Assembly: GCA_964304625.1 (NCBI GenBank)
Contig: OZ199840.1
Span: 4,556,658 to 4,614,765, forward strand
DNA from: Kudoa neothunni
Lineage: Eukaryota; Animalia; Cnidaria
Direction: 5' to 3'
DNA length: 58,108 bases
Shown in pieces: positions 15,872-58,108 of the stretch (positions within the stretch are counted from its first letter, which is position 1; the number at the start of each line of letters is the position of its first letter). Position numbers and translations under genes: made by a program. The notes under the pieces were generated by a model. That model worked only from the letters and a program-made list of their open reading frames with translations. It did not search any database and was not told the origin of the DNA.

Positions 15872-18859
15872 ATGAAATATTTCGTCAATTCATTGGGAAT
15901 TTTTCTTGTTCTTTTTTGTAATTTTTGTACATTACATTTGTTTTATTAATTAAATAATAGTCAGATATATTTTATTAGATGATGTAGGAGCTTCAGTTAC
16001 ACCACAATCTCTAACAACTACAACCAACGCTCTTACCTATAAGATTGTGAAACATGCGAATAAAATGACGGTTAACTTAATATTAAGTGGTACTGCTTAC
16101 GCTCCTTCAAAGTATTGCCGAATCAAAAAATCAGATGAGGCTGGTGCAGCATATGAAGAAATCGATTCTTGCTCAGAAAATAATACTGATAATGTTACTG
16201 GAAAATGTGTAAGGGCATGTATTGGAGATGGCAATAAGTTAACTTACGATAAATTTTCTCCGAGAACAAAATATGTTGAAGTTTTTGTAGCTAATGATGC
16301 TACAGGAGTTTCTACAAAAAATACTGACCCAACTATCTTCGGACTTGAGATACGTAATTTATGGTTTTTAATTAATATAAAATTTTTTTAGCTTTGTTGG
16401 TAAATCCACAAGTCACAGTAACAACTACAAATCAGAATAAATTGAAATTTAGCACAATAACGTGCAAAAACGTTGCATGTCCCATACATTACAAGGGTAT
16501 TGAATATGCTGCTGGACCAGTAGGCGGAACTTGTGTCGCACCAAAAGATTCAGATGCCGCGGACGAAGTAGAATTTGATTTAATGATTCCTCATTATGAA
16601 ATGAAATGCACGAACTATCCAAGTTTCTTTTATAAACTTCAAAATAGATACACATTAATGAATATGGAAGTTTATGCTCCCCAATATTATGTGACATATA
16701 ATAATAGCGAAGATAAAACTAAATATTTATTAAAATTTACTAACAAATTCCCATTTGAAATTTGTAAGTTCAGTATTAAAAAAGCGTCAACCGACATTCC
16801 TACAAATGGTACGAATGATTACAAATCAAATTGCGGCGGAAATAATAAAGATTGTTATGCACCATGTAACGACGTTGAGCTTACTTTTGTGGCATCAGAA
16901 GGGATCGTTGAAGTTTTAATCCAGTCAAGACATTTTCCGCTCCAAGCAAATGGAGCCGAATATTCTGGCTACACACAAAAGAAATATGGTAATATTGATT
17001 AAGTTGTTTTTAAATAATACCCTTTTAGTTATTACAGAAACTAATGATGCTAATGAGACTGGAAAATTGCTATCAGCCTACTTAGCAGCTGGTGTCACAT
17101 TAAATGTACCTTTATTTAATCCTGGTACCGTCAATACAAAGTTTACGCAATGTACCGTAAGTTACTACGCTGCTGATAAACCAATGCCTACAACTACCAC
17201 TACCACTACCACTGCAACTAGAGCGACATGCAATACTTCTGGTACAACACAATGTGCCACCCAATGCACCGCTTCATTAACAATAATCCAGCTGACACCC
17301 GGTAAACCTTATATTCTCGAAATTGTTGCGGCATCAACTGCGCCGGGAAGTGACAATAAAATTCCCGCTAGTTTTAAAGAACATGTATTCTTTAGAACAA
17401 GTAAAATTATAAAAATACCTACATAATAATTACATGAATATTTAATTTAGCGAATGAAAATACAAAAACATTTCCTACTGTTACACCAACAATACGAGAT
17501 ACAGGTCTATCTATTAAGGCACTTGCTGTTGAAACATCGATTTCCAAAACTAGCACCACATGTGCTTATTATCTAAGTCCCCGAGGAAAGGATACATATG
17601 TTTGTGCAATGTGCGTTGATAGTTATCCATGTAGAGGATATTGTGGGGAGTCTCAAACTATCGTGGGGTTATCTCCAGGAACCGATTATGATCTCAAAGT
17701 TGTTGCACACGAAGGTTATGGTTTCAAAGTTCACCAAATCAGAACTGGTATCATATTTTTTCATAAAATAATAAAAGAACAATTTTTAAGTTTTGTCAAC
17801 ACTTACACTTGAAAAACAAATGTTGGATAAAGGTTTTAAAGTCGCAGGGTCCTTATCATCGCCTTACCCAGCAGCCGTATGTCATTACAAAGTTAAAGTT
17901 AAACAAGGAGAAGATTATGGACTAATTTACGAATGTCCAGCACGAACTCCAACAAGAGCTGCTAGAAGTTCTACTCTCGTATCAACATCAAAAATGGGGG
18001 TGGCTAGATCATCAGGGGACCAACGAAACGTGAATGCAGCAACTGCCACCAATACAGCTACGATCTCATCGTGCCAAGCACCACCCTTATGCAGTAATAT
18101 CATTTTTAGTGAAGGATACGAATCAGACAAAGATTATCAAGTTTTGGTGACTGCTGTTGGAAGGTCCACAGAAGTTTCAATAAATATACCCAAAAGTATT
18201 TCCTCATAAATTTTTATATAACCACTTTTAAAATTGAATTAATACTACAACGAAAATTAAAAAATTTACCAATGCTATTTAAAATTATATTTTAGACCCA
18301 TTGCCTTCACAACCCACGGATCTCAATAAACAATTAATAGTGGTGATCACACGTGTCGACAAAACATTGACTGTTAGCACCACTTTACCCGCAGGTTTGA
18401 ATGAAGATGCATTATGCAAATGGCAGTTAAAAAATTCGGGAGAACCCTCAAATCCCATCGTGAAAAAATGCATGACTATTGGTAAAGGTTGCACCCAATT
18501 ACCTCGTTGCAAGGAATTCACAATTACACAAGTTGAAGATATACACGATTACCATTTGACTCTATTCTATAATGAAGATCCAAATACCTACGGTGTTGGA
18601 ATAATTAAACAAGGTAACCATCGTAATATTTCAATGTTAATTATAAACATTTAATAGGTGAAACTTCAAACAAATCAACGTAACTTTTGATATGTCATCA
18701 TTATTTCTAATTTCTTTTAGATCCAAAAATACGATGTATTAATAATCAATTTTGATTATTTTAATCATTATCTTTAGAATTATTTCCGTGATTGTTCCAG
18801 TTGTTATCGTAGTTATCGGAATAGGTTTCTATTTCGGATACATGAAGAACAAAAATTAG
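15872..18859 (+). CDS. Unknown type I membrane protein, copy 1 (848 aa predicted; 10 exons: 15872-15917, 15961-16353, 16392-16988, 17029-17400, 17451-17747, 17791-18195, 18296-18613, 18658-18679, 18721-18735, 18778-18859)
   Basis: All junctions are GT..AG and in frame (2547 nt). Signal peptide MKYFVNSLGIFLVLFFRYILL. About 7 Cys-containing modules, several ending in FN3-like strands (LTPGKPYILEIVAA, LSPGTDYDLKVVAH). TM IIISVIVPVVIVVIGIGFYFGY, tail MKNKN*. Confidence 0.85.
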
Positions 18860-21016
18860 AATTCATTGATGACAAAAATATTTAGATTTTTTAGAATTAT
18901 CAATTATCGTTTGTTAGTAACACGAATGTCCCAGCTTCGCATGGGAATGAGGATATTTTGTCATAGAACGCGTTAAAAAATATATGAATTCTTTCAATTA
19001 ATCCAAAGAACATAAATAAATAACTTTTCATTTAGAAAAAATACTTTTAGCCACTGATCAGTACATTAAAAATTAGGATCATCTCATGGAGATCATTAAA
19101 ATAACAAAACTGTTTAAATTGAGACGACTTGATTTTATTGTTTAAATTCATACTCCTCAATCCAGCATATTCTTCTACTATGTTTCTCCAACACTGTTAC
19201 TGTTGAATAACACCAAAATATCGACAAAAATATTTATAACTATATAAAATAAAATTTCAATGTATTTATTAAACCTCATCGCTTAAAGTTAAATTAAACG
19301 AATGTTTTAGCGAAATTTGAGGGGGCAGTTTTAGTAATAGGGGTTATAATCTACGCGAACAATTCGTCATCGATTTACCAAAGTTGTGTCTTTTTATGTT
19401 ATTTCAAGTCATATAGAGAACTTTTATAGTGTTATTAATTAATTAATAAAATATACAGTATATAACCGATAGTACGTAGTCACCTCGGGAACACAAAAAA
19501 GTGCTTACTAAACGTTGCAAGCGATAGTATATACGTATAATACTCACGCAGTTTTTGTGTTTTTAGTTTTCTAACTATTAATTCAACTTATTTTTAGATA
19601 AGGATAACTAAAAATACATTTTTAAGATTTGATGGATAAAAAATAATTACAAAATTTTGTTGAAACCATATTTGTGATGAAATATTTATATCATTTTACA
19701 GTGCAACCTAGGACTTCGACCATAGTCCGTTCTAGAAGTGTGTCCGAATTCCGAGTAATTTTTCCACTGCAAAATAATGTAATTCAGTTTAATCCATTAC
19801 CGCGCATCAAATAAACGATTATTTTTATTCTTACTTATTAAAAACAATCATTTTTTTATAAAATATAACAAATAAAAATTTGATATGATAAAAAAGATGA
19901 CATATAGGATAAAAATTTTTTGGTTGTCATCGATAGATTATAAAGGGGTCTCTTTTGACTGAGTGACTCTTCTTCTAGGATTTTGTTTCTTATCTGTTTT
20001 TGCTCCAACAAGATTTGTTCTGAATACCCATTCTATAAGTGTTAGAACTCAAAGGTATTTCTGACTCAAAATTTTTGGTGAAACTCCGAGGTTACGCTGT
20101 ACATTTGGATAAATTTAGTAAACAATCAGTTTTACGAGATTAAAGTATTATTTTATTTCTTATTGATTTTTAACGCCATATGAAACAAAGATTTTTATAC
20201 TTTTCTCAAAAAATTAAAAAAAACGTCACCTTACTATTTAATTTGGATACAATGTATACTGTAGAATGTTAAATGACGTTTATTATCGTGCCTTTAGGTA
20301 CATTTTGGAATAATTTTCAGTTATTTATAATCCTCCTGCAAAAATTAAACAGTTAAAATTTAAATTTTATCCTCCCTTCCAATCTTCCAATATCCCAATA
20401 ATCGATAATAAAATTTATATGGTTTTAAAAAGTGCGTAAAATTTGTAGTCACGTGATACCACAGATCGGTAATCCCTAGTTTAACTCGAAGATATTTTAA
20501 AGACTTTTACTTTTTACAATCATAAAAGTGTTAAAAATCGTACCATCTAATACAAACATTGGATAAATCGTGTTGATGAAAGTGTGTACTATCGGTTGGC
20601 TAGTGTATAACACTTAGACCTTAAAAATCGACGTAAATCGACGAAAATCGATTGTAATCGAAAACGGCAATGCCTAATTATAATCCATAATTTCAAAAGT
20701 ATAATTAAAATCTAGATAAGAATAAATCCGCTTATTTAAAATCTGCAACTCTATAAGCGGATATTAATTTAAATAGGATCTATGTAAAAATATTAAATAA
20801 TTATCTCCGAAACATCCATGTTTCATATTGTAAGTTTTTTGATCACAACAACATCACTAACGTTATTTTATTTAATAATAAATTGCTAAATGTGGGAAAA
20901 TGTATATCTATTATAATGCTCCATTATTTTAGTTGAATAAAATTTGTAAAATCCAAATCCACCTATTATAATAATTAATTACAATCAATTATAAATAAGC
21001 CTAGTAGTATTTGAAC

Positions 21017-21087
21017 ATACCTTAATGTATTTATCGAATTTATCGAATTTATCGAATTCATCGAATTCATCGAGTTCATTAAGGTAT
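21017..21087. repeat. Five 9-bp tandem units (TT(T/C)ATCGAA) enclosed by an 11-bp inverted repeat
   Basis: Units at 21030-21074. ATACCTTAATG (21017-21027) and CATTAAGGTAT (21077-21087) are perfect reverse complements. Confidence 0.8.
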
Positions 21088-21517: not shown

Positions 21518-22599
21518 CTATTGTTGAGATTGTTTGGTGTTGAAGCTGGTTAGACCGAAAATATCAAGTTTTCTTTTATCGGTAGGTTTAAGAATTTGGA
21601 ATGAGCACATTAGGCAGTCATCAATACTCATCAACGCACCAGCATTATCGAATTCGCCACAGTAGTTCGGTGCAGAGAATACTGTGACAAGTTGACGTTT
21701 AGAAAAGAACTCGTATCCATCTTCGACAACTTGATGCGCTCTGCAAATGAGGTCTAGATCGTGTTTTTGTAGAAATAGTTGAACGGTATCTGATCCGAAG
21801 GTGTATGAGACACCTCGATCATTTTCACCATAGCCTTTGATGTCTTTGTCTGGGTCGGCCCATAACAAATCGCACAATAGGCCTTGGTCGGGTACATCGG
21901 TAGGACGCATAATTCGGCGTATCTGTTCCATACTTTGTAGATCTGGAGAGAGACCTCCATGACAACAGAAAATTTTCTCATCGATCAATGCAGCCACCGG
22001 TAGACAGTTAAAACAATCAGTAAAAGTTTTCCACAATTTCACATTATATCTACGTTTACCTACACATCAAAAACAAATTAGAACACATAAAAACAACTAT
22101 TACACTCATCAAAAAATCCATATATTCTATTGATGCTAGCACATTCATGATTGCCACGTAGTAAAAAAAAATTCTCTGGATATTTAATTTTGTAAGCAAG
22201 CAATAGACATATTGTCTCCAACGACTGCTTGCCTCTATCCACATAATCACCCAAAAATAGATAATTCGAATCGGGAGGGAATCCACCATATTCGAACAAT
22301 CGTAACAAATCAAAATATTGGCCGTGAATATCTCCACACACTTTCAACGGTGCTTCCAACTCCAATAGTATTGGTTGACTCAAAAATATATCTCTTGATT
22401 TTATACAAAGCCCACGTATTTCATTTTCGGTTAGTGCAACCACTTTCCCTGGCCGAGTTCCTATTACTACATTAAATTGTGAGAGAACTGCCTATCAAGT
22501 TGCAGGCCAGGTGTGTAACAACTGAACTGGGTGGTTTGACCTACCTTCTAACAGCCGTGATATAATGCTATCTATATTCAACTTCTCTGAGTCTGCCAT
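21518..22599 (-). CDS. PPP1C: Serine/threonine protein phosphatase PP1 catalytic subunit, 3 exons (22599-22545, 22466-22104, 22059-21518)
   Basis: [57 protein letters not shown] and SAPNYC motifs. Introns of 78 and 44 nt restore the frame. Confidence 0.97.
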
Positions 22600-25018: not shown

Positions 25019-26529
25019 CCTTCTAAGTAAACTGAGGTCCATTTGGACCCCAAACAAGATTGCCATCCTGTTTTCTCAGCCGTTATGTAATAACTATAAT
25101 TCGTACTTCTATTATCGTAAAACATGTTTATCTTTAAAGTAATAGATTTATTGGAATTTTCATGTTTCACAGCAATTTTTTTGATATTTTAAAAATATAT
25201 TATTTATAGTAATTTTTAAATGGAAATTAAATTTCAACAAATAATTTTATCTAACGCGAGCGAAAGTTTTTATTGTGTAAGAATAGATTTCTTTTTAGGA
25301 AGTAACGAGGGTAGTATTGATACTAATGAAATAGAAACACCCCACCTAGTGTAATTGAAGGAGACTCTCGGTTATGAGATTGATGAAAATGACAATTCGC
25401 TTACAAACAAAAACAACAATTTATTGAGTGCAATCAAAGCAAAGAAAACCAAGGTGGTCGCAGATAATAAAAATGAATTTTCTTCAAGATGTGATTATGT
25501 ACGCCACCCAAAGGATCTTTTGTATTGTAGGATGTTTTTCATCATTTCTTCACAATGGAAATAGTGGAACAAACAATTAAATATATCAATCAGTACGATA
25601 AGAAATCTTATGGGAAGAAATGGAAAGATGTTGATGAAATGCATGGTTTTATTAGCTGTTTATTGCACATGGCTATTCATAAGAATGGACAAGAGCCTCT
25701 TGTTGAAATGATTAATTGTGACGAAGGTACGAGGATATACAAAGAACCTTTTTCTTTGTACAGATTCAGGCAACTAACCAGAGCGCTCCACTTCGATAAC
25801 GCAGAAACTAGGGAGGAACGGCAGCTACATGATAAATTTTGCACATTTAGAGAAATATGGAACATTTAGGTTAACATGGCAAACAAAAATTATAACCACG
25901 GAGAAAATATGTCATGCTGAGCAATTTGGTTTCTTTTAGATAATATATAAAATGTATGCCAACAATATATGGATTAAAATTTTCTCCAAATTCGTAAAAA
26001 AAATATTTTTTCTTCTAATCACATATATGATGGTGGAATCAACGACATAATCCTCATGTTAAACATTGGTGTCTATATTTCATTATGAAGGAATATGAAT
26101 GCAATTACAATTCGCGCACTTAAATGTTTATTTTATTTTTGCCTGGTATTATAATTAAAACAAATTAACAATAAGCCATTATAAACGGTTGTTGCTCACG
26201 CATGTAGAATATTTAAACTTTCTCCATCCTCATAACATTTTTACATTTTTATTTTGTCCTAATTAAAGCTATACAAGTATTTTTAGTATTAAGAATTTTT
26301 ATTGTCAAAACGCTACATTATTTAAGGCAATTATTGAGCGTTATTTGACAAATTGTCTCCTAAATTGTGCTCAAAGTGTGATTATTCATTTGAAAATTTG
26401 TAATTAACTAACAAAACAGTTACAAGAGAAGTTAATAATTGAGAATAGATTAAATATGAACGAAATTTCTTTTTTCTTCATATTCTTGATTTTTAATGGA
26501 GAAAAGAAAGATAAATATTGAGTTAAGGG
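25019..26529 (+). mobile_element. piggyBac (PGBD4-like) transposon relic
   Basis: ORF 25555-25869 (IVEQTIKY...EMHGFISCLLHMAI...FSLYRFRQLTRALHFDN...DKFCTFREIW) is piggyBac transposase. TTAA-CCTT.. at 25015 with GGTCCATTTGGACC, and ..AGGG-TTAA at 26526-26533, are candidate ends. Confidence 0.7.
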
Positions 26530-28359: not shown

Positions 28360-29366
28360 GGCTATTTTACAGTATATGTGACGAACTTCGGATACAATAT
28401 TAAATTGAATATAAAACCATTATATATTTAATATTTGCACAGATTGCTCAAGTCCTTATTTTTAAATTTACACCTAAACAAAAAACTGGATATATATCCG
28501 GATTTTTGTTGGTCGCGTTTCTGTATTTGCGTTTGAAAGCTCCCCAAGTAGCTTCCATTCATTACGAATCTCCTTTTATGGATTACCTTTTCATGAACAA
28601 ACCCTAAATCAGCCAGTCGATTATACCCCAGCCCAACCATCTGTCCATATTATGGAATTGTCTTCAACATTTTCGATGATTATTCCCTCGAGAACACTTT
28701 GATTCCTAAGGCGGGAAATTTTTAAGAAAAAGTTTCTATTTTAGTCTATCATCCAATAATGTATTGTCGGCTCTTCAACAACCTACCTACACATTATATT
28801 TTCTTTTTGAGATAGCGGTTTCATCGATCTGTACAACAACTCCTATTTCACAAATTTTTTCGGATTCTTCATCAAGTTTTGAAGCCAATAAATCATGAGT
28901 AATACTCTTCCATTCAAAAATGGTAGCATATGATTCTATTTTGAAATAAAATGGTAGTATTTTGTAAGTAGCCGTTGGATTTTGAATGATGTAAACCATA
29001 AAATGGAAACTTTTCCAAAGAGGAAGTTTTGATAATTCGAAAATACTATTTTTTCTTACTAAGGATCGTTTTTGGCAATTTGTACATCTAAATTGGTAGC
29101 CATCACCGGTGTCGTTTCTTGTTGATATCTTCATTACCGCGCCACACGAACATTTCATGTAGCTTTGTAGGAGTCCAAGATTCTGCAAAACTTTAATTGT
29201 ATACGCATCCTCTTCACGAAAATATGCAAAATCGAAAACTGTTATATCGTCAATGTCTTCAAAGGTGAATAATTTCCTAAAACTTCCCATCCATCACACG
29301 CGGTTATTCGTTATTCCACAATTTATGAAACATGTCGAAGTTCGTCACACATATTGTAAATTAGCC
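28360..29366 (-). mobile_element. Merlin / ISXO2-like DNA transposon, internally deleted
   Basis: ~31-bp TIRs GGCTA(T/A)TTTACA(G/A)TAT(A/G)TGTGACGAACTTCG. ORF 28787-29290 has a Zn-ribbon (CSCG...CTNC) and VVQIDET...KRKYN; downstream TDGW.GYNRLADLGFVHEKVIH. Confidence 0.88.
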
Positions 29367-30123: not shown

Positions 30124-30192
30124 TTTATGTCATAATTCATGTCGTAACTCATGTCGTAACTCATGTTGTGACTCATGCTGTGACTCATACTG
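30124..30192. repeat. 12-bp minisatellite (~5.7 units, CTCATGTCGTAA-like) downstream of the RBM39 stop
   Basis: TTTATGTCATAA TTCATGTCGTAA CTCATGTCGTAA CTCATGTTGTGA CTCATGCTGTGA CTCATACTG. Confidence 0.85.
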
Positions 30193-30308: not shown

Positions 30309-33300
30309 CTATATAACAGATGGGAAAAGATTACGATAGGAAGATGAGGAAATGTGGAACGATTTGATCACACGGCCCGCATATTTTCTTCCATTCATAT
30401 CATCCACCACGGCAGAAGCTTCTTTATTTGATTTCACTTTCAGATATACATTTCCCTAATTGATAGATTAATTAGAATCAACCCACTCCGTTTAACAGAA
30501 AATTAGGTGTGGAATTTGAATGCACATACTTCTTTGCTATTTTTGTCTACATTGATATGTACAATTTGGGCGAATTTCGATACCACTTTGTAGACATCGT
30601 TTTCAATTTCTTTAAGGATTTCTGGCCTAGAACTTTCTTTAGCCGGATCGAACATATTAGAAAGCACAATAAAAGGTGTGGGGGATGATGAGGGAGGTGG
30701 GGTTTCAGTTGCTGGTGCAGGGGTAACGTTGGAAATAAAGTCAGTCATACCACGAGCGGCAGCGAGTTTTTGCATGAGCATAGCTCTGGAGGTGGCATTC
30801 AAACCAACACCACCTTTATCAGTTTCCTCATCATCAAGAATGTCAGTATTGAGGGTGGGTTGATTTGTCACATCTGAACTATCCGATACTAGTCCAACTT
30901 TGATTTTCTTGCCAACCAACTCGAATCCATCCATTTTAGCTATCGCCTGTTTTGCACTTTCAGCATCTTTGAATGAGATGTTGCCGTAACCTTTCGAACG
31001 ACCGAATTCATCGTATTGAAGTTGTACACTTTCGATCGTGCCAAAGGGTTCAAAAATGGCGCGCAACATTTTCTCAGTTATATTCAGGTTGAGTGAGCCC
31101 ACGAACAATTTGGTCAAGCCCTGTGTTTTGGACATCTGAGCCAGTTCTAAAGCGGCACGATTTTTCTCGGACATCGTGTTTTGGATAATAACAGGACCAC
31201 CATTAAGAGGTGCTCCACTCATTTTGATGGCAAGTGTCACTGATTCTATGTGTTGAAATTCTACATAGGCGATCCCTTTGGAACGTCTCGACGCTCGGTC
31301 GGCTATCATACGGATGTCCCGAATTTTTCCCACATCAGCGAAAAATTCCTCAATATCTCTGCTACTTACGGACTTTTGCAGTTGCATCATCAACACAGTT
31401 CTGGCGTCTCGTTCCGCATCTGTCAAAGGAACCATATCTGCTTTGTCTACCCTAAAATATTGCGGGGGTTCCAAATTAGATATTGGGCTTCCATTGTACA
31501 ACATAAACTGTACATATTGGTCCATTTATTGGCGGACGATCGTTCATTTTTTCTCGACGAATCTCTACTGTCTCCTCTACGTCGATGACGTCGGTGACCA
31601 CCATTTGAAGATGATGACCGATGTCTTCGTTTGTATCGATGTGAAGATCTGTCACGATGTCTGTCTCGAGATCTCGATCTTAATATCACACACAACATTC
31701 ACTCGAGTAACACCTCATGAAAAAAGAATACCTTCGACGAACTCGATCTCTATTTAATTCGTTTAAAATCAATCAAATTTAATAAAAGTTTCACGTCCGA
31801 CACTTTTATTAAATATAATGTTCAACAACAGAGGCAGTGTGTTAGCTAGTTTATTCGTTCATTGACACCTTAACAAGGAACTCGAATTCTCTTAGCTCTA
31901 CATAATATAGGGGGTTATTCATTGTTATAATCTAGCAAAATTAGGTCAAAGTATAAACTGCAATACCAAGATTTATTATTCAATAGCACTATAGCTAATA
32001 ATTTGACTAAAAATGCTTGTTTTGAGAAGGTTGTTAAGAAATACGTAATAGTATCGCGAAACATTCTTATAAATTGTAAAAAATCCGCGAGTTCGCATTT
32101 CGACAGGGTTAACTCTGGCAATACAGAATTTCAGGAGCTATTTCAGCTAGCATTAATTTGTAATTTTTATGCAAATTATTCATACAAATATCTAACTGTT
32201 TCTAGTTGTACTTATTTTTATTATTGAGTTGAATTGGTGGAAAACGTGACCTTACTTTATAGACTAATTAATGACAATTTATTAAAATTGCTAGAATATA
32301 CTCGGTATAATTTATTATTTCATCAAAAAAATAAATAATTAAATCAGAAAATGATGAAATTAGAGAACAACACTGCTGGTGGCATAATTCCTGCTCTTAA
32401 TCAATCCCATGGGATAATCCTTGACACATGATAACATTAAATAATGAAGGGTAGTTTAGCAGCTTTACTCATTATTTTAAATGGAACATAATGTTAATTT
32501 TGTCCTTCATTTAGTTGTTTCATAAAATTTGAATCGTATAAATCACCAAATGGAGATATTTAAAATTAAGAATCACCATAGTTTTCAACACTGTCACGGA
32601 ATTATCTTAAATGATATACTAATTGTAAAGCGTAATATTCAAATAAGTAAAACCTTTATAAATTTCAATACCAAAACTCAGCGCTTCCAGACTCAAACCG
32701 GAACGCGCTGTATTAAATTAGGTCGATATAAGAGTAAGGTTAGTTAGATCCTTTATTACATCCACGGGATAAAAACATGTTGGAACCAGGAACGAAATAA
32801 TCAAGTTCTGGTAAAGCTTAATTTTGAGAATTTAAAATACACGCTCATTAAATATAAAGATTAAAATTAATTATAGCAATTATTTTTATTGACTTCGAAA
32901 TAACCCCATTATTTCTATTGCATAAATTAAATAATCACGACTGGTCTGAAGTATTCTTGAATTAACGCGAGAAACAAAGAAATTGAAGTTCCAAATATAC
33001 GCCAATCTGGAAAAAGCTATAATAACAGATTAACCTTGAAAATAAGTTATTATAGCTTTTTTCCAGCGTAAAATTAAGATAAAAATGGATTAATTTTTGA
33101 TAAGTTAACAATTTAATTTTATCATAAAAAAATATATTCGTTATAATCAAAAATTGATGAGAATTCATTATTAAAATTAGAAAAACTAAATTTTCGTCCA
33201 CATTGATTTTAAAGTAATTGCGCTATTAGGTGCACAATTAGAATATATATCTTGAACCCATGCAACGACCACATTGCCTTCCAGATCATAATACCTATTC

Positions 33301-42650: not shown

Positions 42651-44004
42651 GTTTCCCGGATACCAACTTTGGAGCAGTACTCGGTAATCGCCAAAAGGAA
42701 TCGATACCAATAAAATTTTGCTTTTTACAACCAGTATATAAGGAAGAATAGTGTGTCAAATCACATTAAAATGTATCAAGATATCTTTAAATTGAGTCTT
42801 TAAAAGTATTCTCATATTTTTATAAATATTTATTAATTTAACCATTGAATAGTACACAAGACTATTAGGTTTGCAATATTCATTGGGCCTGTCAATAAAA
42901 TAGAGGGTAATGGTAAAGTATGCGGTACCTAAAAAACGTCCTCTTGCGCATGTTTTTTCGTATTTCTTTTTTCACGATTCTTGATAACAAAATAAAGGAA
43001 TATGGAGAGCAAAAATTCAGCTCAGAATAATTATTTAAAATTTTGAGAATTTTTCATCCGAAAGCAGTCGGATACACGTATAATCTCCATGTTTTTTCAA
43101 CAAACATTGAATTGATCTCTAATTTGTTTTGATAATCATTCATAAGTTGGTTCAATTTCAATTTTTTTTTCATATAAACACAAATTTTACAATATCAAAT
43201 TTTATTGTACAGGTTTTTTAGGTTTTAAGCATGAATAGTTTAAAAGCGAGAAGACATCCACGTGTTCTCAAATGCATTTTGCTAATTCTCTTGGATTTAA
43301 TGAATTTTTTTAATAATTAATAAACATTCTATTTTAGATAAACATTTATTTTCAATAGTGAAATAACTTAATGCAGATTATATGAAGTTATTACTTTTTA
43401 GGAGGAATCCTTACATGTGTATTTAGTGCAGCATTCGATAAACGTAAAAATGTAGTTTAAAAATTCTCAAAATTGTATTTCTATAAAATTATTAGTTCTA
43501 ATGAATTATATATGCCCCGATAAAAATAATAACCTTGATCAACTTTTGATGTTTACATATTGAAATTTTCACATTTAGTACATTTTGTCGAATTTTTTGT
43601 TAGGAAATGATGGAATATAAAAAAACCTATAAAACAATAAAAATATAGTTTGAATTTTAATAATAAAAAACTGAATAATTTCTTAATTTATGAAAAAAAT
43701 CTAATACAAAAATTATAAACTAAAACAAATCTTACTACATTTATATCAAAATTTAAAAGTTCACAAAATATTTTTATTACAGTGAAAAATGAGGTGTGAA
43801 ATCTGCAAAAAGTTTATTTTAAAAGTTAGCTTTTATACAATTGTTATATATCAATAGTAAAAAATATAAGCAGTAATAAATAACTTTTGAATTAATAACT
43901 AAGAAACAAACAAAACAATTCAATGTTTATTGGAAAAAGCGCATTGAAATTTTTACGGGACCAAAGGATATTAATTTGAGAAAAACAATTAATTAGCTTG
44001 TGTT

Positions 44005-44432
44005 AACTTCATCTTTATTACTTTTTCTATTTTTTTATCTTTTAAAAAGTTCGTGGTGCATATAGTTACTGAGCCGGGCCAGAATTCGATTTTTAAAAAT
44101 CCTCCGGGTCAAGAAATAACGAATTAGATAGCACTTTAAGAGAGTTTAAATAATTCGGGAACCAAAACAATATGACAATGACCTTAAATCATTTGGAGTT
44201 AGTGCCGGGACAAGAAATTGTTAATTAAAAACCAGGATTGATACACTCCTGCACAGAAATGACCATGATTTAAATTTCGGAATCAAAATCGACAAAGAGT
44301 GATGCTTAAAACTTTTTAGTTATTTTATTTCTATGGGATAATTCGAAATTTCAATATATTTTTTGAATGCTATTAAAAAAAATCTCCAGGCAAAATCTTC
44401 CCCAAGTAACGGTGGTAAGTTCGCGATAGTTA
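44005..44432 (-). repeat. Second (inverted) copy of the 10850-11280 dispersed repeat
   Basis: The reverse complement aligns with 10850-11280 (e.g. GGGGAAGATTTTGCCTGG, GGAGTGTATCAATCC, GACCCGGAGGATTTTTAAAAATCGAATTCTGGCC). Confidence 0.75.
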
Positions 44433-44803
44433 TATACAAATTCAAATTATCGGTATTGAGAATAGAAAAAAACCATTATAAAAAGGTTGGAATCTTGGTT
44501 AATTTATAAACTAAATAATTGATTACATTAAGTTAGCCTACACAATGATTAAATGTACAGACAAATTAATTTTAAACGTTACAATTTGAATTATAAGGTA
44601 AATTTCTCAAAAATGTTTCCATAAAAGTTTATTTGATCCCTAATTTGTCTGTTTAATGAGCATATGAGTAAAATGAATCTTATCAAACTTTACTATTCTT
44701 AACAACAATTTATTATTCAACATGTATACATTCAATAAGCCCATTTCGCGATATATTTTATGAATACAACGATAATTTTCGTAATTTGATTAACTTCATC
44801 AAA

Positions 44804-47778
44804 ATGAAATATTTAGTCTATTCATTGGGAATTTTCCTTTCAATTTTGTGTAACATTTACATTTTGTATTTATTTTATTAATTAAAATATTAGCCAGACA
44901 TGTTTTATTAGCTGGGGTAGCCGGTCCAGATGCATCACAAACTCAAACAACTACAACTAAAATTCTTACCTATAAAATTGTGAAACATACTAATCAATTG
45001 AAAGTTAATTTAGTATTAAGTGGTACTGATTATACTTCAAAACATTGTCATATAAAAAAGTTAAATGAGGCTAATAATGTTTATGGAGAAATCGATACGT
45101 GTCCAGAAAATAATGTTGGCACTAGTACTGGAACATGTGTTAGGACATGCACAGAAGATGATATAAGATTTGCTTACGATAAATTTTCTCCGAGGACCAA
45201 ATATGTGGAAGTTTTTGTTGCCGGTACAGCTGTAGAGGCTTCTACAAAAACTACAGACCCAACTATCTTTGGACTTGAGATAGGTAGTTTATATTTTTTT
45301 AAAATTAATCTAAAATTTCATTAGCTTTACTGGTAAATCCGCAAGTTACAGTAACTACCACAACCGGGAATAAATTAAAATTTAGCACAATAACTTGCAA
45401 AAATGTTGATTGCCCAATATATTACAAGGGTGTTGAATATGCTTCTGGAACTAAAGGAGCAAGTTGTATAGCAGAAAATGATACGAATAATGAAGTTGAA
45501 TTTGATTTGATGATACCTCATTATGAAATGAAATGCGTGAATTATCCAAGTTTCTTTTATAAACTTCAGAATACATACACATTAATGAACACAGGCGTTT
45601 ATATACCTCAATATTACGTTACATATAGTAACCAAGAAAAAACTAAATACTTATTAAAATTTACGAACAAATTTCCTTTTGAAATTTGTAAGTTCAGTAT
45701 TAAAGATGAGTCAGTCGCAATCGATGCTCAAAGTACAAACGATTACAAATCAAATTGTGGTGAGGAAAATAAAGAATGTTATGCACCGTGCAACAGCGTT
45801 GAACTCACTTTTGAGGAATCAAAACCAGTCGTTGAAATTTTAATTCAATCCAGACATTTTCCACTCCATAAAATTGAGGCCAAATATTATGGCTACACAC
45901 AAAAGAAATATGGTAATATTGAATAAATTTTTTAAATAATAACCTTTTAGTTATTACGGAAACTAATGATGCTAATGAAGCTGGCAAATTACTATCATCA
46001 TACTCAACAGTTGGTGTCACGTTATATGTAGCTTTATTTAAACCTGGTACTGTTGATACCAAGTTTACACAATGCACTGTAAATTATTACGCTGCTGACA
46101 AACCAATGTCTACCACTACCACTACCACCGCCACTAGAGCACAATGCGATAGTTCCAATACACAATCATGTGCCGCGACATGTGCTGATAAGTTGACAAT
46201 ATTACGGCTTGCACCCGGTAAACCATACATTCTTGAAATTGCTGCAGCAGCAACTGCACCAGGAGAAACCAATAAAATCCCAGCTAATTTTAAAGAACAT
46301 ATATTTTTCAGAACAAGTCAATGTATAAAAATATCTACATAATAATTACATGAAAATTTAATTTAGCGAATGACGCATCAAAAATATTTCCTACTGTTAC
46401 ACCAACAATACGAGATACAAGTTTATCTATCAAGGCACTTAATGCTGAAACGTCGATTTCCCAAACTAGCACCACATGTGCTTATTATCTAAGTCCCCGA
46501 GGAAAGGATACATATGTTTGTGCAATGTGCGTTGATAGTTATCCATGCAGAGGATATTGTGGGGAGTCTCAAACTATCGTGGGGTTATCTCCAGGAACCG
46601 ATTATGATCTCAAAGTTGTTGCACACAAAGATTATGGTTTCAAAGTTCACCAAATCAGAACTGGTATCATATTTTTTCATAAAATAATAAATGAACAATT
46701 TTTAAGCTTTGTCAACATTTACACTTGAAAAACAAATGTTGGATAAAGGTTTTAAAGTCGCAGGTTCCTTATCATCGCCTTACCCAGCAGCCGTATGTCA
46801 TTACAAAGTTAAAGTTAAACAAGGAGAAGATTATGGACTAATTTACGAATGTCCATCACGAACTCCAACAAGAGCTGCTGGAAGTTCTACTCTCGTATCA
46901 ACATCAAAAATGGGGGTGGCTAGATCATCAGGAGACCAACGAAACGTAAATGCAGCAACTGCCACCAATACAAATACAATCTCATCGTGCCAAGCACCAC
47001 CCTTATGCAGCAATATCATTTTTAGTGAAGGATACGAATCAGACAAAGATTATCAAGTTTCGGTGACTGCTGTTGGAAGGTCCACAGAAGTTTCAATAAA
47101 TATACCCAAAAGTATTTCTTCATAAATTTTTATATAACCAATTTTAAAATTGAATTAATACTACAACGAAAATTAAAAAATTTACTAATGCTATTTAAAA
47201 TTACATTTTAGACCCATTATTGCCTTCACAACCCACTGATCTCAATAAACAATTAATAGTGGTGATCACACGTGTCGATAAAACATTGACTGTTAGCACT
47301 ACTTTACCTCAAGGTTTGGACGAAAATGCGTTATGCAAATGGCAGTTAAAAAATTCTGGAGAACCCTCAAATCCCATCGTGAAAAAATGCATGACTATTG
47401 GTAAAGGTTGCACTCAATTACCTCGTTGCAAGGAATTCACAATTACAGAAGTTGAGGATATACACGATTACCATTTGACTCTATTCTATAATGAAGATCC
47501 AAATACCTACGGTGTTGGAATAATTAAACAAGGTAACCATCATAATATTTCAATGTTAATTATAAACATTTAATAGGTGAATCTTCAAACAAATCAACGT
47601 AACTTTTGATATGTCATCATTGTTTCTAATTTCTTTTAGATCCAAAAATACAATGTATTAATAATCAATTTTGAGTATTTTAATCTTTATCTTTAGAATT
47701 ATTTCCGTGATTGTTCCAGTTGTTATCGTGGTTATCGGGATAGGTTTCTATTTCGGATACATGAAGAACAAAAATTAG
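44804..47778 (+). CDS. Unknown type I membrane protein, copy 2 (same 10-exon structure)
   Basis: MKYLVYSLGIFLSIL signal peptide, the same introns and modules as copy 1, and an identical TM and MKNKN* tail. No frameshift seen. Confidence 0.85.
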
Positions 47779-50436: not shown

Positions 50437-53389
50437 ATGAAATGTTCAGTCTATTCAATGGGAATTTTTCTCCAATTTTTTTGTAAATTTTATACACTCT
50501 ATTTATTTTATTAATTAAATATTAGCCATATATGCTTTATTAGTCGAGGCAAGCACACTGGTGGCACCACAACCTCAAACAACTACAACTAAAATTCTTA
50601 CCTATAAGATTGTGAAACATACTGATCAAATGAAAGTTAATTTGGTATTAAGTGGTACTGCTTATACTTCAAAGTATTGTCATATAAAGAAATCAAATGA
50701 GGCTGGTGAAGCTTATGAAGAAATCAATCCTTGCCCCGAAAAAGATAATAACTATAGTACTGACAAATGTGTAAGGGCATGCATTGGAGAAGGAAATAAA
50801 TTAGAATTCGATAAATTTTCTCCAAGAACAAAATATGTCGAAGTTTTGTAGATGATAATGCTGAAACTGCTTCTACAAAAACTACAGACCCAACTATCTT
50901 CGGACTTGAGATACGTAATTTAATGTTTTTAATTAATATAAAATTTTTTTTAGCTTTATTGGTGAACCCACAAGTTACAATAACTACTACAACTCACGTA
51001 AATTGAAATTTAACACAATAACATGCAAAAATGTCGACTGCCCAATATATTACAAGGGTGTTAAATATGCCGACGGAACAGCTGGTGGAAGTTGTATCGC
51101 AACACAAGGCACGAGTACCGAGGATGAAGTAGAATTTGATTTAATGATACCCCATTATGAAATGAAATGCACGAACTATCCAAGTTTCTTTTATAAAACT
51201 TCAAAATAGATACACATTAATGAAGACGGACGTTTATGTACCTCAATATTATGTGACATACAATAAAGAAAAAACTAAATATTTATTAAAATTTACTAAC
51301 AAATTTCCATTTGAAATTTGTAAGTTCAGTATTAAAAAAGCGTCAACCGGCATTCCTCAAGGTAGTACTAATGATTACAAATCAAATTGTGGTGCCGCAA
51401 ATAAAGATTGTTATGCACCATGTAACGACGTTGAGCTTATTTTTGAGACATCAGAAGGGGTTGTTGAAGTTTTAGTTGAGACAGACATTTTCCGCTCCAA
51501 GCAAATGGAGCCGAACATTCTGGCTACATACAAAAGAAATATGGTAATATTGAATAAATTTTTTAAATAATACGCTCTTAGTTGTTACGGAAACTGATGC
51601 TGAAAATGACACTGGAAATTGTTATCAAATTATTTAGCAACTGGTGTCACGTTAAATGTTCCTTTATTTAAACCGAGCGATATTAACACCAAATTTTCCG
51701 AATGTACTGTAAATTATTACGCTGCTGATAAACCAATGCCTACCACCGGCACTACGGCACAATGCAATAATTCTGGTACAACACAATGTGCAACAGATTG
51801 CACCGCTTCATTAACAATAATCCAGCTTGCAACGGGTAAACCTTATATTCTCGAAATTGCTGCATCAGCAACTGTATCAGGAAGTAACAATAAAATCCCA
51901 GCTAGTTTTAAAGAGCATATATTCTTCAGAACGAGTAAAATTATGAAAGTTCCTAATGATGACGTATATATTTAATTTAGCGAACGACGAATCAAAAACA
52001 TTTCCTACTGCTACACCAACAATACGAGATACAGGTCTATCTATTAAGGCACTTAATGTTGAAACATCGATTTCAAAAACTAGTACCACATGTGCTTACT
52101 ATCTAAGCCCGCGAGGGAAAGATACGTATGTTTGTGCAATGTGCGTTGATAGTTATCCATGCAGAGGATATTGTGGGGAGTCTCAAACTATCGTGGGGTT
52201 ATCTCCAGGAACCGATTATGATCTCAAAGTTGTTGCACACAAAGATTATGGTTTCAAAGTTCACCAATTCAGAACTGGTAACATATTTTTTCATAAAATA
52301 ATAATTAAATAATTTTTAAGCTTTGTCAACACTTACACTTGAAAAACAAATGTTGGATAAAGGTTTTTAAAGTCGCAGGTTCCTTATCATCGCCTTACCC
52401 AGCAGCCGTATGTCATTACAAGTTAAAGTTAAACAAGGAGAAGATTATGGACTAATTTACGAATGTCCATCACGAACTCCAACAAGAGCTGCTGGAAGTT
52501 CTACTCTCGTATCAACATCAAAAATGGGGGTGGCTAGATCATCAGGAGACCAACGAAACGTAATGCAGCAACTGCCACCAATACAAATACAATCTCATCG
52601 TGCCAAGCACCACCCTTATGCAGCAATATCATTTTTAGTGAAGGATACGAATCAGACAAAGATTATCAAGTTTCGGTGACTGCTGTTGGAAGGTCCACAG
52701 AAGTTTCAATAAATATACCCAAAAGTATTTCTTCATAAATTTTTATATAACCAATTTTAAAATTGAATTAATACTACAACGAAAATTAAAAAATTTACTA
52801 ATGCTATTTAAAATTACATTTTAGACCCATTGCCTTCACAACCCACTGATCTCAATAAACAATTAATAGTGGTGATCACACGTGTCGATAAAACATTGAC
52901 TGTTAGCACTACTTTACCTCAAGGTTTGGACGAAAATGCGTTATGCAAATGGCAGTTAAAAAATTCTGGAGAACCCTCAAATCCCATCGTGAAAAAATGC
53001 ATGACTATTGGTAAAGGTTGCACTCAATTACCTCGTTGCAAGGAATTCACAATTACAGAAGTTGAGGATATACACGATTACCATTTGACTCTATTCTATA
53101 ATGAAGATCCAAATACCTACGGTGTTGGAATAATTAAACAAGGTAACCATCATAATATTTCAATGTTAATTATAAACATTTAATAGGTGAATCTTCAAAC
53201 AAATCAACGTAACTTTTGATATGTCATCATTGTTTTCTAATTTCTTTTAGATCCAAAAATACAATGTATTAATAATCAATTTTGAGTATTTTAATCTTTA
53301 TCTTTAGAATTATTTCCGTGATTGTTCCAGTTGTTATCGTGGTTATCGGGATAGGTTTCTATTTCGGATACATGAAGAACAAAAATTAG
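50437..53389 (+). CDS. Unknown type I membrane protein, copy 3 (about six 1-nt indels, mostly in homopolymers: sequencing error or pseudogene)
   Basis: MKCSVYSMGIFLQFF signal peptide and the same exon layout. Frameshifts near 50845, 51195, 51482, 51617, 52365 and 52562. Identical TM and tail. Confidence 0.75.
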
Positions 53390-54277
53390 AACTCTCAAAT
53401 CAAAATATTATTTAAGCTTTTTATAATTAATTATCAAATATAGTTTGTTATTATCTCCAATTTACTCAAGTATTCGCTGATTTTTAATTTTTATCAAACT
53501 GTGGATTTCTACACGTACAATTTTATTATTAAATTAATTCAATGATAACTTCGACATTCTATTAAGTGAAGGTTTTAATTAAGATAGTGTCTCTCTACCA
53601 TTGATGGCAATTTCGTTCGTTCAAATAATTTGAGGCTGTAATTTCGTTCACGTTCGTTCATTAGTATTTTGTGCAAATTTGGAGTCTTGCGAGCGAACAA
53701 GAACTTACCATCCCCGCCCTAGACTATTGGAAGGTTCTAAATATCGAAATCTAAGAAAGTAGGTAACAGTTATTTTCGGGACCTACTGGAAATTGGAGCT
53801 CAGAGAGGGTTTTTTCTAATAGCGAAAAAAATCCACAAAAGAGATCGTTCACACATGAACTCATTGACCCTGTTTAAACTGCTGGTTTATTCCATCAATA
53901 AAGTTAATAAATCTAACTTATAATTATGTGCAATATAAGGTAGTTAATTGGTTCTGTTTAATTTCACATAACAATGGATCTTTTAACAATTAAAAAATTG
54001 CTTGTTCGCCCCCTTAATTATAACTTTGATATTAAAAATTTTCTGTAACCACGTAAGTCATTGGTTGTCGTGAACTATCTCATGCAGTTGCTTAAACCAT
54101 CGTTAGAAAATATACGGCAGAAATGATAAAATAATCAAAAAATCGCTTCGATCAAGATTGAAAACGACGTTATTATCCTCCAACCTTGATCTAACAATCA
54201 CCAAAATTCTTCAGTGATAGTTAAGAAAATATCATAAACCATATTTCTCACTCAGAGCCACCAACATAGCTACAGTC

Positions 54278-55884
54278 CGAATGGAGAAATTTTGCCGATG
54301 GGAGAAAGATTACCTGCGCAAAACGTGAATAAAACTTAATTTAAATCGCATATTAACTGCGTAAGACCAGTTAAGGGACCCAGAATGAGTGGAAATTCAA
54401 ATAAAGATATTATTATGCTTAAGACTACCAAAAATAACCGACATGATGCTTTGTGAAGATTATTTTTACGTCAAAGATTACAAAAAAAATGAAATTCAAT
54501 ATTGGAGGTGTCAAGTTAGGACAATGTAGAGGAAGGTTAAGAATAACAACTCTTGATAATACGGAAAACATTGAAAAAACTGGATTTCACAATCACGTCG
54601 TAATCGGAGGTAGGACAAAAATAAAAAATATTCCACAATAAAATAAAATTCTTAGCAGAAACTACTTTATATCCAACAAACAAGGTGTATAGTATTGCAA
54701 CCAGCAAAGAAAAAAATTAATGAATTGCCGATTATTCCTAAATCTTTTGTATACAAAAACATAAGAAATTTAAGAAAAAGAAACAATATTCAAATTAATC
54801 CAGCGACAAATCTTTGTGATGAAATTAAGACTCTGAGAGATGAATCCTTTTGTTTGTTCGATTCAGGTTCTGATGACGAAAACAGAATAATCATTTTTTC
54901 TACAGAGAAAAACCTTTTACATCTGAAAAATTCAGATTTTTGGATTGCGGATGGAACTTTTAACGTTGCGCCGAAGGGATTTTTTTCAGTTATATGCTAT
55001 TCATGGTAATGTATTCACAGGGTTTTTCCACTAGCTTTTGTTTTAATGTCGGACAAGTCTGAGAAAAATTACACGAAAATTATTGAAATAATCAAGGAGA
55101 AGGGTAATATGGAGTTACCGAAATCAATAATTATTGACTTTGAAGTAGCAGCATATAATGCCTTTAAAAAAGCATCAAAACATGATGTACAATTTTGTTT
55201 GTTTCATTTCGGACAATGTAATTACCGAAAAATTCAATCACCTGGACTTTCCGAGGAATACCAAAATAACCTAGATTTTAAAGTTTTCGTTAATAATGCG
55301 TTATGTCACTCGCATTTGTCCTAAAGATTTTGTTGAAGCTGAATTCAAAAAATTGTGTACTTCTGCTGAAAAATTTCAGATTCCTATCTTCAATTATTCT
55401 TAAATATTTTGAAAAAAAACTTTATTAGAAGCAAAAAGTATCCCATTGAATCATGGAATGCATACCAAAGAGTGCTGAACGATGTAAAACTAACATCTAA
55501 CAACGCAGAAATATTCCATCGGCCACTTTTATTCCCGCTTTGACCAATCACATTCAGGATTAGTCACATTCATCACAAATCTAAAAGAGCAACAAAGTTT
55601 GATTGAACAGGAAATTATGTATCAGCTATGTAATCCAAATACAACAAATCAGAACAAAAAGACGGAAATAAAAATGGAAAAAATTGAAGGAGATATGCTC
55701 GAATTATGGTTCCTATTATGGTACATTTTATGTAGAAGCTATATCTAAAACGTATAATTGGAAATTAAAATAAAATTATAGGTACTTTGCGTTTTTTTTC
55801 AATAAAAAATTACGGTTGATGTATTTCTTTGCATTCGCGCATGCGCGGGGTAATCTTTCTCCATCGGCAAAATTTCTCCATTCG
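54278..55884 (+). mobile_element. FLYWCH-type Mutator-like element (MULE), ~1.6 kb, ~43-bp TIRs
   Basis: TIR CGAATGGAGAAATTTTGCCGATGG(G)AGAAAGATTACC begins exactly where the flank diverges from the copy-2 flank. Contains a transposase. Confidence 0.8.
54385..55773 (+). CDS. MULE transposase with N-terminal FLYWCH zinc finger (several 1-nt frameshifts)
   Basis: YFYVKD...QYWRC..QCRGR...FHNH (FLYWCH), WIADGTFNVAP (D), IIIDFEVAAYNAF (D), FCLFHFGQ (CxxH) and TSNNAEIFH (E). Confidence 0.8.
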
Positions 55885-56771
55885 GACTGTAGCTATGTTG
55901 GTGGCTCTGAGTGAGAAATATGGTTTATGATATTTTCTTAACTATCACTGAAGAATTTTGGTGATTGTTAGATCAAGGTTGGAGGATAATAACGTCGTTT
56001 TCAATCTTGATCGAAGCGATTTTTTGATTATTTTATCATTTTCTGCCGTATATTTTCTAACGATGGTTTAAGCAAACTGCATGAGATAGTTTCACACAAC
56101 CAATGACTTACGTGGTTACAGAAAATTTTTAATATCAAAGTTATAATTAAGGGGGCGAACAAGCAATTTTTTAATTGTTAAAAGATCCATTGTTATGTGA
56201 AATTAAACAGAACCAATAACTACCTTATATTGCACATAATTATAAGTTAGATTTATTAACTTTATTGACGAAATAGACCGCCATTTCAACAAGGTCAATG
56301 AGTTCCATGTGTGAACGATCTCTTTGTGTGGATTTTTTCGCTATTAGAAAAACCCTCTCTGAGCTCCAATTTCCAGTAGGTCCCGAAAATAACTGTTACC
56401 TACTTTCTTAGATTTTCGATATTTAGAACCTTCAATAGTCTAGGGCGGGGATGGTAAGTTCTTGTTCGCTCGCAAGACTCCAAATTTGCACAAAATACTA
56501 ATGAACGAACGTGAACGAAATTACAGCCTCAAATTATTTGAACGAACGAAATTGCCATCAATGGTAGAGAGACACTATCTTAATTAAAACCTTCACTTAA
56601 TAGGAATGTCGAAGTTATCATTGAATTAATTTAATAATAAAATGTACGTGTAGAAATCCACAGTTTGATAAAATTAAAAATCAGCCGAATACTTGAGTAA
56701 ATTGGAGATAATAACAACTATATTTGATAATTAATTATAAAAAGCTTAAATAATATTTTGATTTGAGAGTT

Positions 56772-58108
56772 CTAATTTTTGTTCTTCATGTATCCGAAAT
56801 AGAGAAACCTATCCCGATAACCACGATAACAACTGGAACAATCACGGAAAATAATTCTAAAGATAAAGATTAAAATACTCAAATTGATTATTAATACATC
56901 GTATTTTTGGATCTAAAAGAAATTAGACAAAAAATGCATGACATATCAAAAGTTACGTTGATTTGTTTGAAGATTCACCTATTAAAATATTTATAATTAG
57001 CATCGAAATATTATGATGGTTACCTTGTTTAATTATTCCAACACCGTAGGTATTTGGATCTTCATTATAGAATAGAGTCAAATGGAGTATCGTGTATATC
57101 TTCAACTTCTGTAATTGTGAATTCCTTGCAACGAGGTAATTGAGTGCAACCTTTACCAACAACCATGCATTTTTTCACGATGGATTTGAGGGTTCTCCAG
57201 AATTTTTTAACTGCCATTTGCATAACGCATTTTTCGTCCAAACCTTGAGGTAAAGTAGTGCTAACAGTCAATGTTTTATCGACACGTGTGATCACCACTA
57301 TTAATTGTTTATTGAGATCAGTGGGTTGTGAAGGCAATGGGTCTAAAATGTAATTTTAAATAGCATTAGTAAATTTTTAATTTTCGTTTGTAGTATTAAT
57401 TCAATTTTAAAATTGGTTATATAAAAATTTATGAAGAAATACTTTTGGGTATATTATTGGAAACTTCTGTGGACCTTCCAACAGCAGTCACCCGAAACTT
57501 GATAATCTTTGTCTGATTCGTATCCTTCACTAAAAATGATATTGCTGCATAAGGGTGGTGCTTGCACGATGAGATTGTATTTGTATTGGTGGCAGTTGCT
57601 GCATTTACGTTTCGTTGGTCTCCTGATGATCTAGCCACCCCCATTTTTGATGTTGATACGAGAGTAGAACTTCAGCAGCTCTTGTTGGAGTTCGTGATGG
57701 ACATTCGTAAATTAGTCCATAATCTTCTCCTTGTTTAACTTTAACTTTGTAATGAATACGGCTGCTGGGTAAGGCGATGATAAGGAACCTGCGACTTTAA
57801 AACCTTTATCCAACATTTGTTTTTCAAGTGTAAGTGTTGACAAAGCTTAAAAATATTTAATTATTATTTTATGAAAAAATATGTTACCAGTTCTGAATTG
57901 GTGAACTTTGAAACCATAATCTTTGTGTGCAACAACTTTGAGATCATAATCGGTTCCTGGAGATAACCCCACGATAGTTTGAGACTCCCCACAATATCCT
58001 CTGCATGGATAACTATCAACGCACATTGCACAAACATACGTATCTTTCCCTCGCGGGCTTAGATAGTAAGCACATGTGGTACTAGTTTTTGAAATCGATG
58101 TTTCAACA
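56772..58108 (-). CDS. Unknown type I membrane protein, copy 4 (3' part only, runs off the window; many indels)
   Basis: The reverse complement encodes the same modules 5-7, micro-exons, TM and MKNKN* (stop at 56772-56774). Confidence 0.75.

Follow-up and report, generated by a model that had tools for sequence, protein, structure and literature searches.

What does a parasite gain from a gene family whose members differ widely in the half farthest from the membrane and are nearly uniform in the half nearest to it, and how does such a family arise? The question is raised by a 58,108-nucleotide stretch of the myxozoan Kudoa neothunni (GCA_964304625.1, contig OZ199840.1, forward-strand positions 4,556,658 to 4,614,765; hereafter the window), in which several copies of a gene for a predicted single-pass membrane protein lie among housekeeping genes. 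These copies belong to what is apparently an undescribed surface-protein gene family of ~450 copies. The divergence of silent and intronic sites points to subfamily-restricted gene conversion as the process that homogenises the 3' half. With a probability of roughly 60%, the family would be a host-facing surface repertoire that combines a base standardised by conversion with a diverse, shuffled tip.

The 10 exons of copy 1, separated by 9 introns of 38-100 nt, encode 848 amino acids with 29 cysteines, arranged as a hydrophobic N-terminus, seven modules, a Ser/Thr-rich stalk, a transmembrane helix, and a basic tail of ~5 residues that is conserved in ~24 family loci. Hydropathy peaks at both protein ends, called as signal peptide and transmembrane helix, predict a type I membrane protein with a single membrane span. 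One module occupies each module-bearing exon except exon 3, which holds two; phase-1 introns stand at every module border, and the stalk is divided over 22-nt and 15-nt micro-exons preceding the transmembrane exon. Each module has four cysteines, module 5 five. Across copies the cysteines are invariant and the intervening loops variable, in agreement with a preliminary description of this DNA. Of the 15 aligned genes, 13 keep the GT/AG pair at every one of the 9 introns, as do most partial loci, a conservation that validates the gene model without RNA; intron 1 has a second, in-frame acceptor 18 nt downstream.

The preliminary description reported four paralogs, each with a signal peptide, about seven modules, a transmembrane helix, and a five-residue tail. 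Hydropathy and the gene model bear out this layout, and copies 1-3 were re-found in the sequence. The paralogs are real, but "copy 4" is a contig-end overlap rather than a separate truncated gene. A 200-N scaffold gap follows directly after the window (58109 onward; C3:4614766-4614965), and the last stretch of the window repeats the 2.6 kb past the gap with no substitution but 34 small indels; it reads as an error-rich, unpurged overlap of a complete gene beyond the gap. The indel error rate of ~1.3% in this overlap makes frameshifts near contig ends of the assembly unreliable. The exon indels of copy 3 are single bases, mostly in homopolymers; two of them, at 52364 and 52419, are missing from independent contigs of the same sample, which have gaps near others. 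Because its indels are mostly homopolymeric and contradicted by the same-sample contigs that clearly cover them, copy 3 is probably intact and its frameshifts read errors.

Between copies 1 and 2, amino acid differences number 50 of 129 in module 1 (exon 2) and 21/99, 26/95, and 31/121 in modules 2-4, then 10/99 in module 5, 6/135 in module 6, and 4/106 in module 7. The hand counts of the preliminary description had anticipated this polarity, as well as the near-identity of the ~100-nt intron before module 7 (intron 6), which differs at 4 of 100 positions against 10 of 43 in intron 1. The switch had been placed within module 5 near ~17530; the best change-point is 17547, where p-distance falls from 0.199 to 0.032 (twice the log-likelihood difference, 214), and it ranges from 17368 to 17792 across the 15 pairs formed by six local genes. 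In copy 1 the homogenised block also takes in the stalk, transmembrane helix, tail, and ~60 nt beyond the stop codon, and the identity of copy 2 with copies 3 and 4 runs ~900 bp beyond the stop.

Synonymous divergence (dS) among the six local genes is 0.34, 0.37, 0.33, and 0.39 in modules 1-4, 0.13 in module 5, and 0.07 and 0.06 in modules 6-7, and intron divergence (p) is 0.12-0.17 in introns 1-4 and 0.04-0.05 in introns 6-9. Since silent and intronic sites are stepped as strongly as amino acids, the step does not come from protein constraint; stronger constraint on the 3' half was rejected as its cause also because the ratio of nonsynonymous to synonymous divergence (dN/dS) does not fall. 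A lower 3' mutation rate is disfavoured by dS to distant subfamilies, which in most modules is ~0.8-1.2 and shows no trend from 5' to 3'. The ratio of 5' to 3' dS goes from ~5 within the cluster to ~1.7 against a relative 700 kb off and ~1.1 against distant subfamilies, arguing for recent 3' coalescence within subfamilies. Because dS and introns drop together while between-subfamily dS is flat, the data point to homogenisation of the 3' half by conversion within subfamilies, the explanation first offered for this multicopy family. Conversion through cDNA is ruled out, given that introns 6-9 are homogenised instead of lost, which implies a DNA template. The 3' drop recurs at C3:0.9, C3:1.7-1.9, C3:9.8, C1:1.1, and C2:9.8 Mb, with a weak one at C3:4.92 Mb; two of the five further clusters were chosen by 5' similarity, a bias against the effect. 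In all six genes the 3' half is slightly richer in GC at third codon positions (0.26-0.29 vs 0.22-0.28).

The 5' half is a mosaic of 40-240-bp tracts and not a frozen remnant. Mean four-gamete incompatibility is 0.57, against 0.33 for neighbouring sites (p<=0.001), and identical 5' tracts of 241 bp are shared by copies 3 and 4, of 159 bp by copies 4 and 6, and of 142 bp by copies 3 and 5. Approximately unbiased tests reject nearly all cross-segment trees; subfamilies are monophyletic in every segment. Copies 3 and 4 differ patchily in the 5' half (0 to 0.29 per 100 bp), and if they were once a single recent duplicate, these differences were imported later.

Broad positive selection, invoked earlier for the diversification of modules 1-4, did not hold up: dN/dS there is 0.28-0.56. 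The preliminary description had also named dN/dS below 1 in these modules, combined with uniform divergence, as a pattern that would speak against it; the ratio is indeed below 1 and the divergence is not uniform. Site models M1a and M2a, in an in-house implementation, gave no positive selection in modules 1-4 of seven local genes, and across 24-28 genes none that is significant in modules 1 (p 0.15), 2, 3, 5, 6, or 7. In module 4 of the larger set, M2a yields a likelihood-ratio statistic of 19.4 and an omega of 2.6 for ~4% of sites, with four residues in a cysteine-bounded loop (exon residues 74-80); the maximum over 20 mosaic-null simulations is 13.8. This signal, the only one of its kind, is only suggestive because seven modules were tested and the loop alignment is doubtful. 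A local M2a signal in module 5 (p 2e-4) was discarded, as the conversion boundary lies inside the module and the signal is gone in 27 genes. Sites of the neutral class make up ~40% of modules 1 and 4 vs ~20% of modules 6-7, which suggests that the variability is mostly relaxed loops and old, shuffled diversity set in a framework under purifying selection.

The assembly comprises 40,260,978 bp in 4 contigs, namely three chromosomes (C1-C3) and the mitochondrion; the window lies on C3, at ~30.6% GC. The published account of this assembly, which came from yellowfin tuna data, gives 40.2 Mb, 30.41% GC, a median intron of 49 bp, 5,316 predicted proteins, 45.6% repeats, and almost no parasite RNA, and makes no mention of fibronectin, antigens, or surface proteins (PMC12239612). 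Literature searches likewise returned no description of the family. Each of four queries finds 451-493 first-look candidate loci genome-wide, and a last-module query finds 308; merging the exon-3 matches by hand leaves at least 222 distinct loci, all at E <1e-28. Scoring covered 150 matches per genome search, and family totals beyond these are first-look candidates. Loci occur on all three chromosomes in tandem clusters, both internal and near-terminal. The exon-3 match is stop-free in 143 of the 150 scored, and the frame is kept through exons 1-6 in 24 of 30 loci at the DNA level, with some of the remaining 6 resembling read errors. A clear pseudogene of the local subfamily, at C3:4.66 Mb, lacks all of exon 6 and some of exons 5 and 7.

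Folds and searches were made exon by exon, with models for exon 3 (modules 2-3) and module 4. They support, at moderate strength, a fibronectin type III (FN3) fold, best for module 4. The module-4 model (predicted local distance difference test score, pLDDT, 65) retrieves FN3 domains or FN3-containing chains in all top-50 rows of Foldseek (probability 0.9-1.0, E 0.01-0.08) and VIA-align (Z 6.5-7.5, root-mean-square deviation ~3 over ~83 residues), and reaches an atlas TM-score of ~0.55 to a Dscam FN3 domain. A PDB sequence search with the module-4 profile found titin as its best match, at E 0.17. The exon-3 model (pLDDT 61) consists of two beta-sandwiches with mixed VIA matches; Foldseek ranks tandem-FN3 cytokine receptors highest for it, at E >0.01, which is not enough to infer that the protein binds cytokines. 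In Pfam scans, FN3-type hits below threshold appear in modules 1, 4, and 5 (15-20 bits vs cut-offs of 25-39); module 5 has atlas leads in addition, and modules 6-7 are FN3-like by motif only. The same scans returned no cadherin domain, and no Ig-family match beyond one member at E 0.054. Shared with the FN3 superfamily (PF00041, PF10179, PF25059, PF24946) are the predicted seven-strand sandwich of module 4, the F-strand motif, and phase-1 introns at module borders. The family differs in that all its Pfam scores fall below cut-off, its modules carry four cysteines, and these modules are barely alignable with one another (best hhalign pair exon 4/exon 5, 43%, E 2.5e-4).

A word-indexed homolog search with exon 3 found no match, and relatives emerged only by profile search, which returned 15 unnamed outside proteins, eight of them traced to five samples. 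The earlier verdict that the family has no homolog was too strong, given the FN3-like fold, the hundreds of paralogs, and these unnamed relatives. One outside sample contains three divergent family copies and an RBM39 81% identical to that of the window, and so likely holds another Kudoa or a close myxozoan; one of its copies retains the module order, intron positions, transmembrane helix, and basic tail. Because homologs occur in outside samples, the family predates K. neothunni, and it may be multicopy elsewhere too. The outside metagenome protein P0121 shares 68-74% identity with a single subfamily (C1:14136900 plus seven related loci) and <=61% with the rest, suggesting that the subfamilies are older than the species. 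A distant outside homolog (L063) has apparently lost intron 2 and kept introns 3 and 4.

In the favoured host-facing repertoire, ~450 lineage-specific surface proteins would each present seven FN3-like modules, stabilised by disulfides and strung into a rod, on a transmembrane anchor with no signalling tail. Ectopic, DNA-templated gene conversion would operate within subfamilies. Long tracts would overwrite the membrane-proximal half and lead to recent coalescence in each subfamily; in the distal half short tracts alone would persist, so that old variants would be retained and reshuffled into new mosaics. The most likely cause would be that copies with identical distal halves add nothing to the repertoire, which would amount to selection for its breadth. 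The most likely role would be that of a host interface, with a varied outer surface turned towards fish antibody or variable host ligands above a standard base. The family is thus a strong candidate, though an unproven one, for a part in immune evasion or in the recognition of hosts or cells.

Several observations weigh against this assignment. The dN/dS values of modules 1-7 among the six local genes are 0.56, 0.28, 0.32, 0.43, 0.37, 0.30, and 0.25, and positive selection in module 1 is not significant. A family gene was found in no RNA run searched. Structure scores reach only the middle range (pLDDT 61-65, Z<=7.5, Foldseek E>=0.0096), the ~45 of ~450 loci read at the DNA level were picked by similarity to copy 1, and the assembly is based on ~7x HiFi coverage (k-mer coverage ~seven) (PMC12239612). 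Adhesion families with no immune role have this polarity too, and since teleost clustered protocadherins show it, it is not diagnostic of antigenic variation (PMC1852091). Antigenic variation has been reported in myxozoans with its molecular basis unnamed, and the candidates so far are Sphaerospora families of 18-27 genes (10.64898/2026.02.11.705288). That the Kudoa family might supply it in a multicellular animal parasite, with one or few of ~450 FN3-rod coat proteins expressed at once, is a tentative proposal. So, too, and with the same doubt, is the idea that the coat proteins might be switched or recombined to escape fish antibodies, the repertoire having been built from an ordinary animal adhesion fold.

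It seems rather unlikely that the family is instead a code by which the parasite's own cells identify or adhere to one another, akin to clustered protocadherins, sDscam, or Alr, in which homophilic distal FN3 modules would sort clones or build cell-in-cell stages and spores, and the base would make common cis contacts within a subfamily. Fugu protocadherins have just such a divergent 5' part, subcluster-homogenised 3' part, and discrete boundary (PMC1852091), FN3 rods are typical animal adhesion modules, cnidarians possess Ig/FN3 allorecognition proteins (PMC9546547), purifying selection predominates, and the restricted similarity of P0121 hints at old subfamilies. However, ~450 copies are many given how few cell types the parasite has and that its annotation counts 5,316 proteins (PMC12239612), a five-residue tail is incapable of signalling by itself, and the Pfam scans offer neither Ig nor cadherin domains.

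Still less probable is a neutral origin of the polarity, in a structural coat or adhesin whose copies are all expressed simultaneously. The step would then be incidental to the points at which conversion or transposon-driven duplication begins, at 3' flanks or at the ends of a MULE-like element, and to escape from conversion at high divergence, and selection for diversity would be unneeded. Such an origin would suit the dN/dS below 1 in every module, a genome with 45.6% repeats (PMC12239612), and a homogenised tract that enters the non-coding 3' flank and stops at the MULE in copies 3 and 4. It sits poorly with a boundary that independent clusters on three chromosomes place within or close to module 5, with a 5' half that still exchanges short tracts and hence has not escaped conversion, and with a module-4 statistic above those of all mosaic-null simulations. 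An assembly artefact, in which collapsed or cross-polished reads create the identical 3' halves, is very improbable. In its favour, coverage is low, "copy 4" is an overlap duplicate, and 3' dS is 0-0.01 among copies 2, 3, and 4; against it, copies 1, 5, and 6 have 3' substitutions of their own (dS 0.06-0.11), each cluster has a separate 3' type, and source-sample contigs contain several 3' variants and rise in depth over the 3' half, a weak measure that is nevertheless expected if several real copies share it.

The surroundings of the copies are listed in Table 1. Both ends of the MULE-like element touch the same 3'-flank site of copies 3 and 4, which stand tail to tail, a layout consistent with a transposon-linked inverted duplication or with a conversion tract ending at the element; the element is central to the inverted duplication and multicopy by contig depth. 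Housekeeping genes lie between and near the copies, so the cluster is interspersed and no pure array, and cnidarians are the best named hits of the window's RBM39. The transposase remnants include hAT, piggyBac/IS4-like, and SWIM/MULE-like types, and others that could be assigned to no type. Two ~500-bp inverted repeats with 76% identity (10851-11352 vs 43932-44433), one just upstream of copy 2, are probably an old non-autonomous element. A short motif ~35 nt 5' of the ATG is self-complementary and retained across subfamilies with near-saturated synonymous sites, and is a possible core-promoter or 5'UTR element shared by the family. Elsewhere in the genome, the only match found to small-subunit rRNA is a 3' fragment at C2:5426127-5426748 preceded by unrelated AT-rich sequence, either a truncated rDNA copy or an insertion.

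Table 1. Positions of the features discussed, counted from the first nucleotide of the window unless a chromosome is named.
Feature	Position	Strand	Remarks
Short upstream motif	15836..15850	+	~35 nt 5' of ATG; recognisable in most of 30 family loci
Copy 1, intact gene	15872..18859	+	7 N-glycosylation sequons; transmembrane helix at ~residues 819-841
Copy 1, exons 1-5	15872-15917, 15961-16353, 16392-16988, 17029-17400, 17451-17747	+	
Copy 1, exons 6-10	17791-18195, 18296-18613, 18658-18679, 18721-18735, 18778-18859	+	
Variable, mosaic 5' half (modules 1-4 of copy 1)	15961..17400	+	local dS 0.33-0.39; dN/dS 0.28-0.56; identical 40-240-bp tracts
Module 4 of copy 1	17029..17400	+	predicted FN3 fold; cysteine-bounded loop with suggestive selection signal
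Homogenised 3' block of copy 1	17547..18927	+	most of module 5, modules 6-7, introns 6-9
Copy 2, intact 10-exon gene	44804..47778	+	3' identity to copies 3 and 4 reaches 48653
Copy 3	50437..53389	+	every splice site intact; 8 private 1-bp exon indels
MULE-like DNA transposon	54277..55885	+	terminal inverted repeats ~38 bp; PF10551 E 4e-4, below cut-off
Redundant contig-end overlap	55467..58108	-	holds "copy 4" (56772-58108)
Complete copy 4, beyond the gap	C3 ~4616264-4619233	-	
RPL15-like gene	1731-2309		housekeeping
PP1 catalytic subunit gene	21518-22443		housekeeping
RBM39 gene	30503-31525		housekeeping
Transposase(-like) remnants	5138-6860, 25555-25869, 28787-29290, 35398-35733, 36782-37072, 38765-39064		

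The ~450 candidate loci equal ~8% of the annotated proteins of K. neothunni and ~3% of its DNA, and gene counts in myxozoans might be underestimated where such families are missed or repeat-masked. The family offers a defined, testable candidate for Kudoa persistence in fish muscle or for host-tissue recognition, and its many replicate clusters lend themselves to the study of polar gene conversion. For diagnostics or antisera, the conserved base suggests itself as the target.

Among known systems, the variant-specific surface proteins (VSPs) of Giardia and other diplomonads, and 18 VSP-like genes of Sphaerospora molnari, resemble the Kudoa family in their signal peptide, cysteine-containing ectodomain, and single transmembrane helix (10.64898/2026.02.11.705288), and in the very short conserved tail and the large family size in a parasite. 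The definition of a VSP demands >10% cysteine (the search pipeline uses 5%) together with >5 CXC/CXXC motifs (10.64898/2026.02.11.705288), whereas the Kudoa protein has 3.42% cysteine, 1 CXXC, and 0 CXC, together with beta-sandwich modules, 9 introns, and a tail that does not fit [KR]X[KR]XK[KR].

With the variant surface glycoproteins (VSGs) of T. brucei, Plasmodium var/rif, and Babesia ves, the family shares hundreds of paralogs with variable distal and conserved proximal parts. Mosaic formation by short conversion tracts is shared as well; the Kudoa mosaics are germ-line and between paralogs. VSGs are anchored by glycosylphosphatidylinositol and have a helical coiled-coil N-terminal domain, and the VSG archive is largely pseudogenic. 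The Kudoa proteins instead have a predicted transmembrane helix and basic tail, their modelled domains are all-beta, and most scored loci are stop-free. No sequence or fold similarity to VSG, var, rif, or ves was found, and Kudoa is a metazoan parasite. The analogy to VSG and VSP drawn in the preliminary description stands as functional likeness and fails as membership: judged by its sequences, the family appears to work in its genetics like VSG, var, or ves repertoires while belonging to none of them, nor to the VSPs.

Among cnidarians, Hydractinia Alr proteins are likewise single-pass, encoded domain per exon in multigene clusters, and bear an unusual disulfide-containing Fn3-like domain (PMC9546547); their V-set/I-set Ig domains and ITAM/ITIM tail were not found in Kudoa proteins, apart from the one weak Ig-family match. 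The closest match in pattern is the fugu Pcdh2 clustered protocadherins, tandem paralogs with divergent distal domains, subcluster-homogenised proximal domains, and a discrete boundary, for which conversion was also inferred from synonymous sites (PMC1852091). The Kudoa modules are FN3-like and not cadherin, and each is encoded by a single exon, though exon 3 encodes two; every gene carries a transmembrane helix and tail in exons 8-10 of its own, with no shared constant exons; and the family spreads over three chromosomes in ~450 copies, against 77 in fugu.

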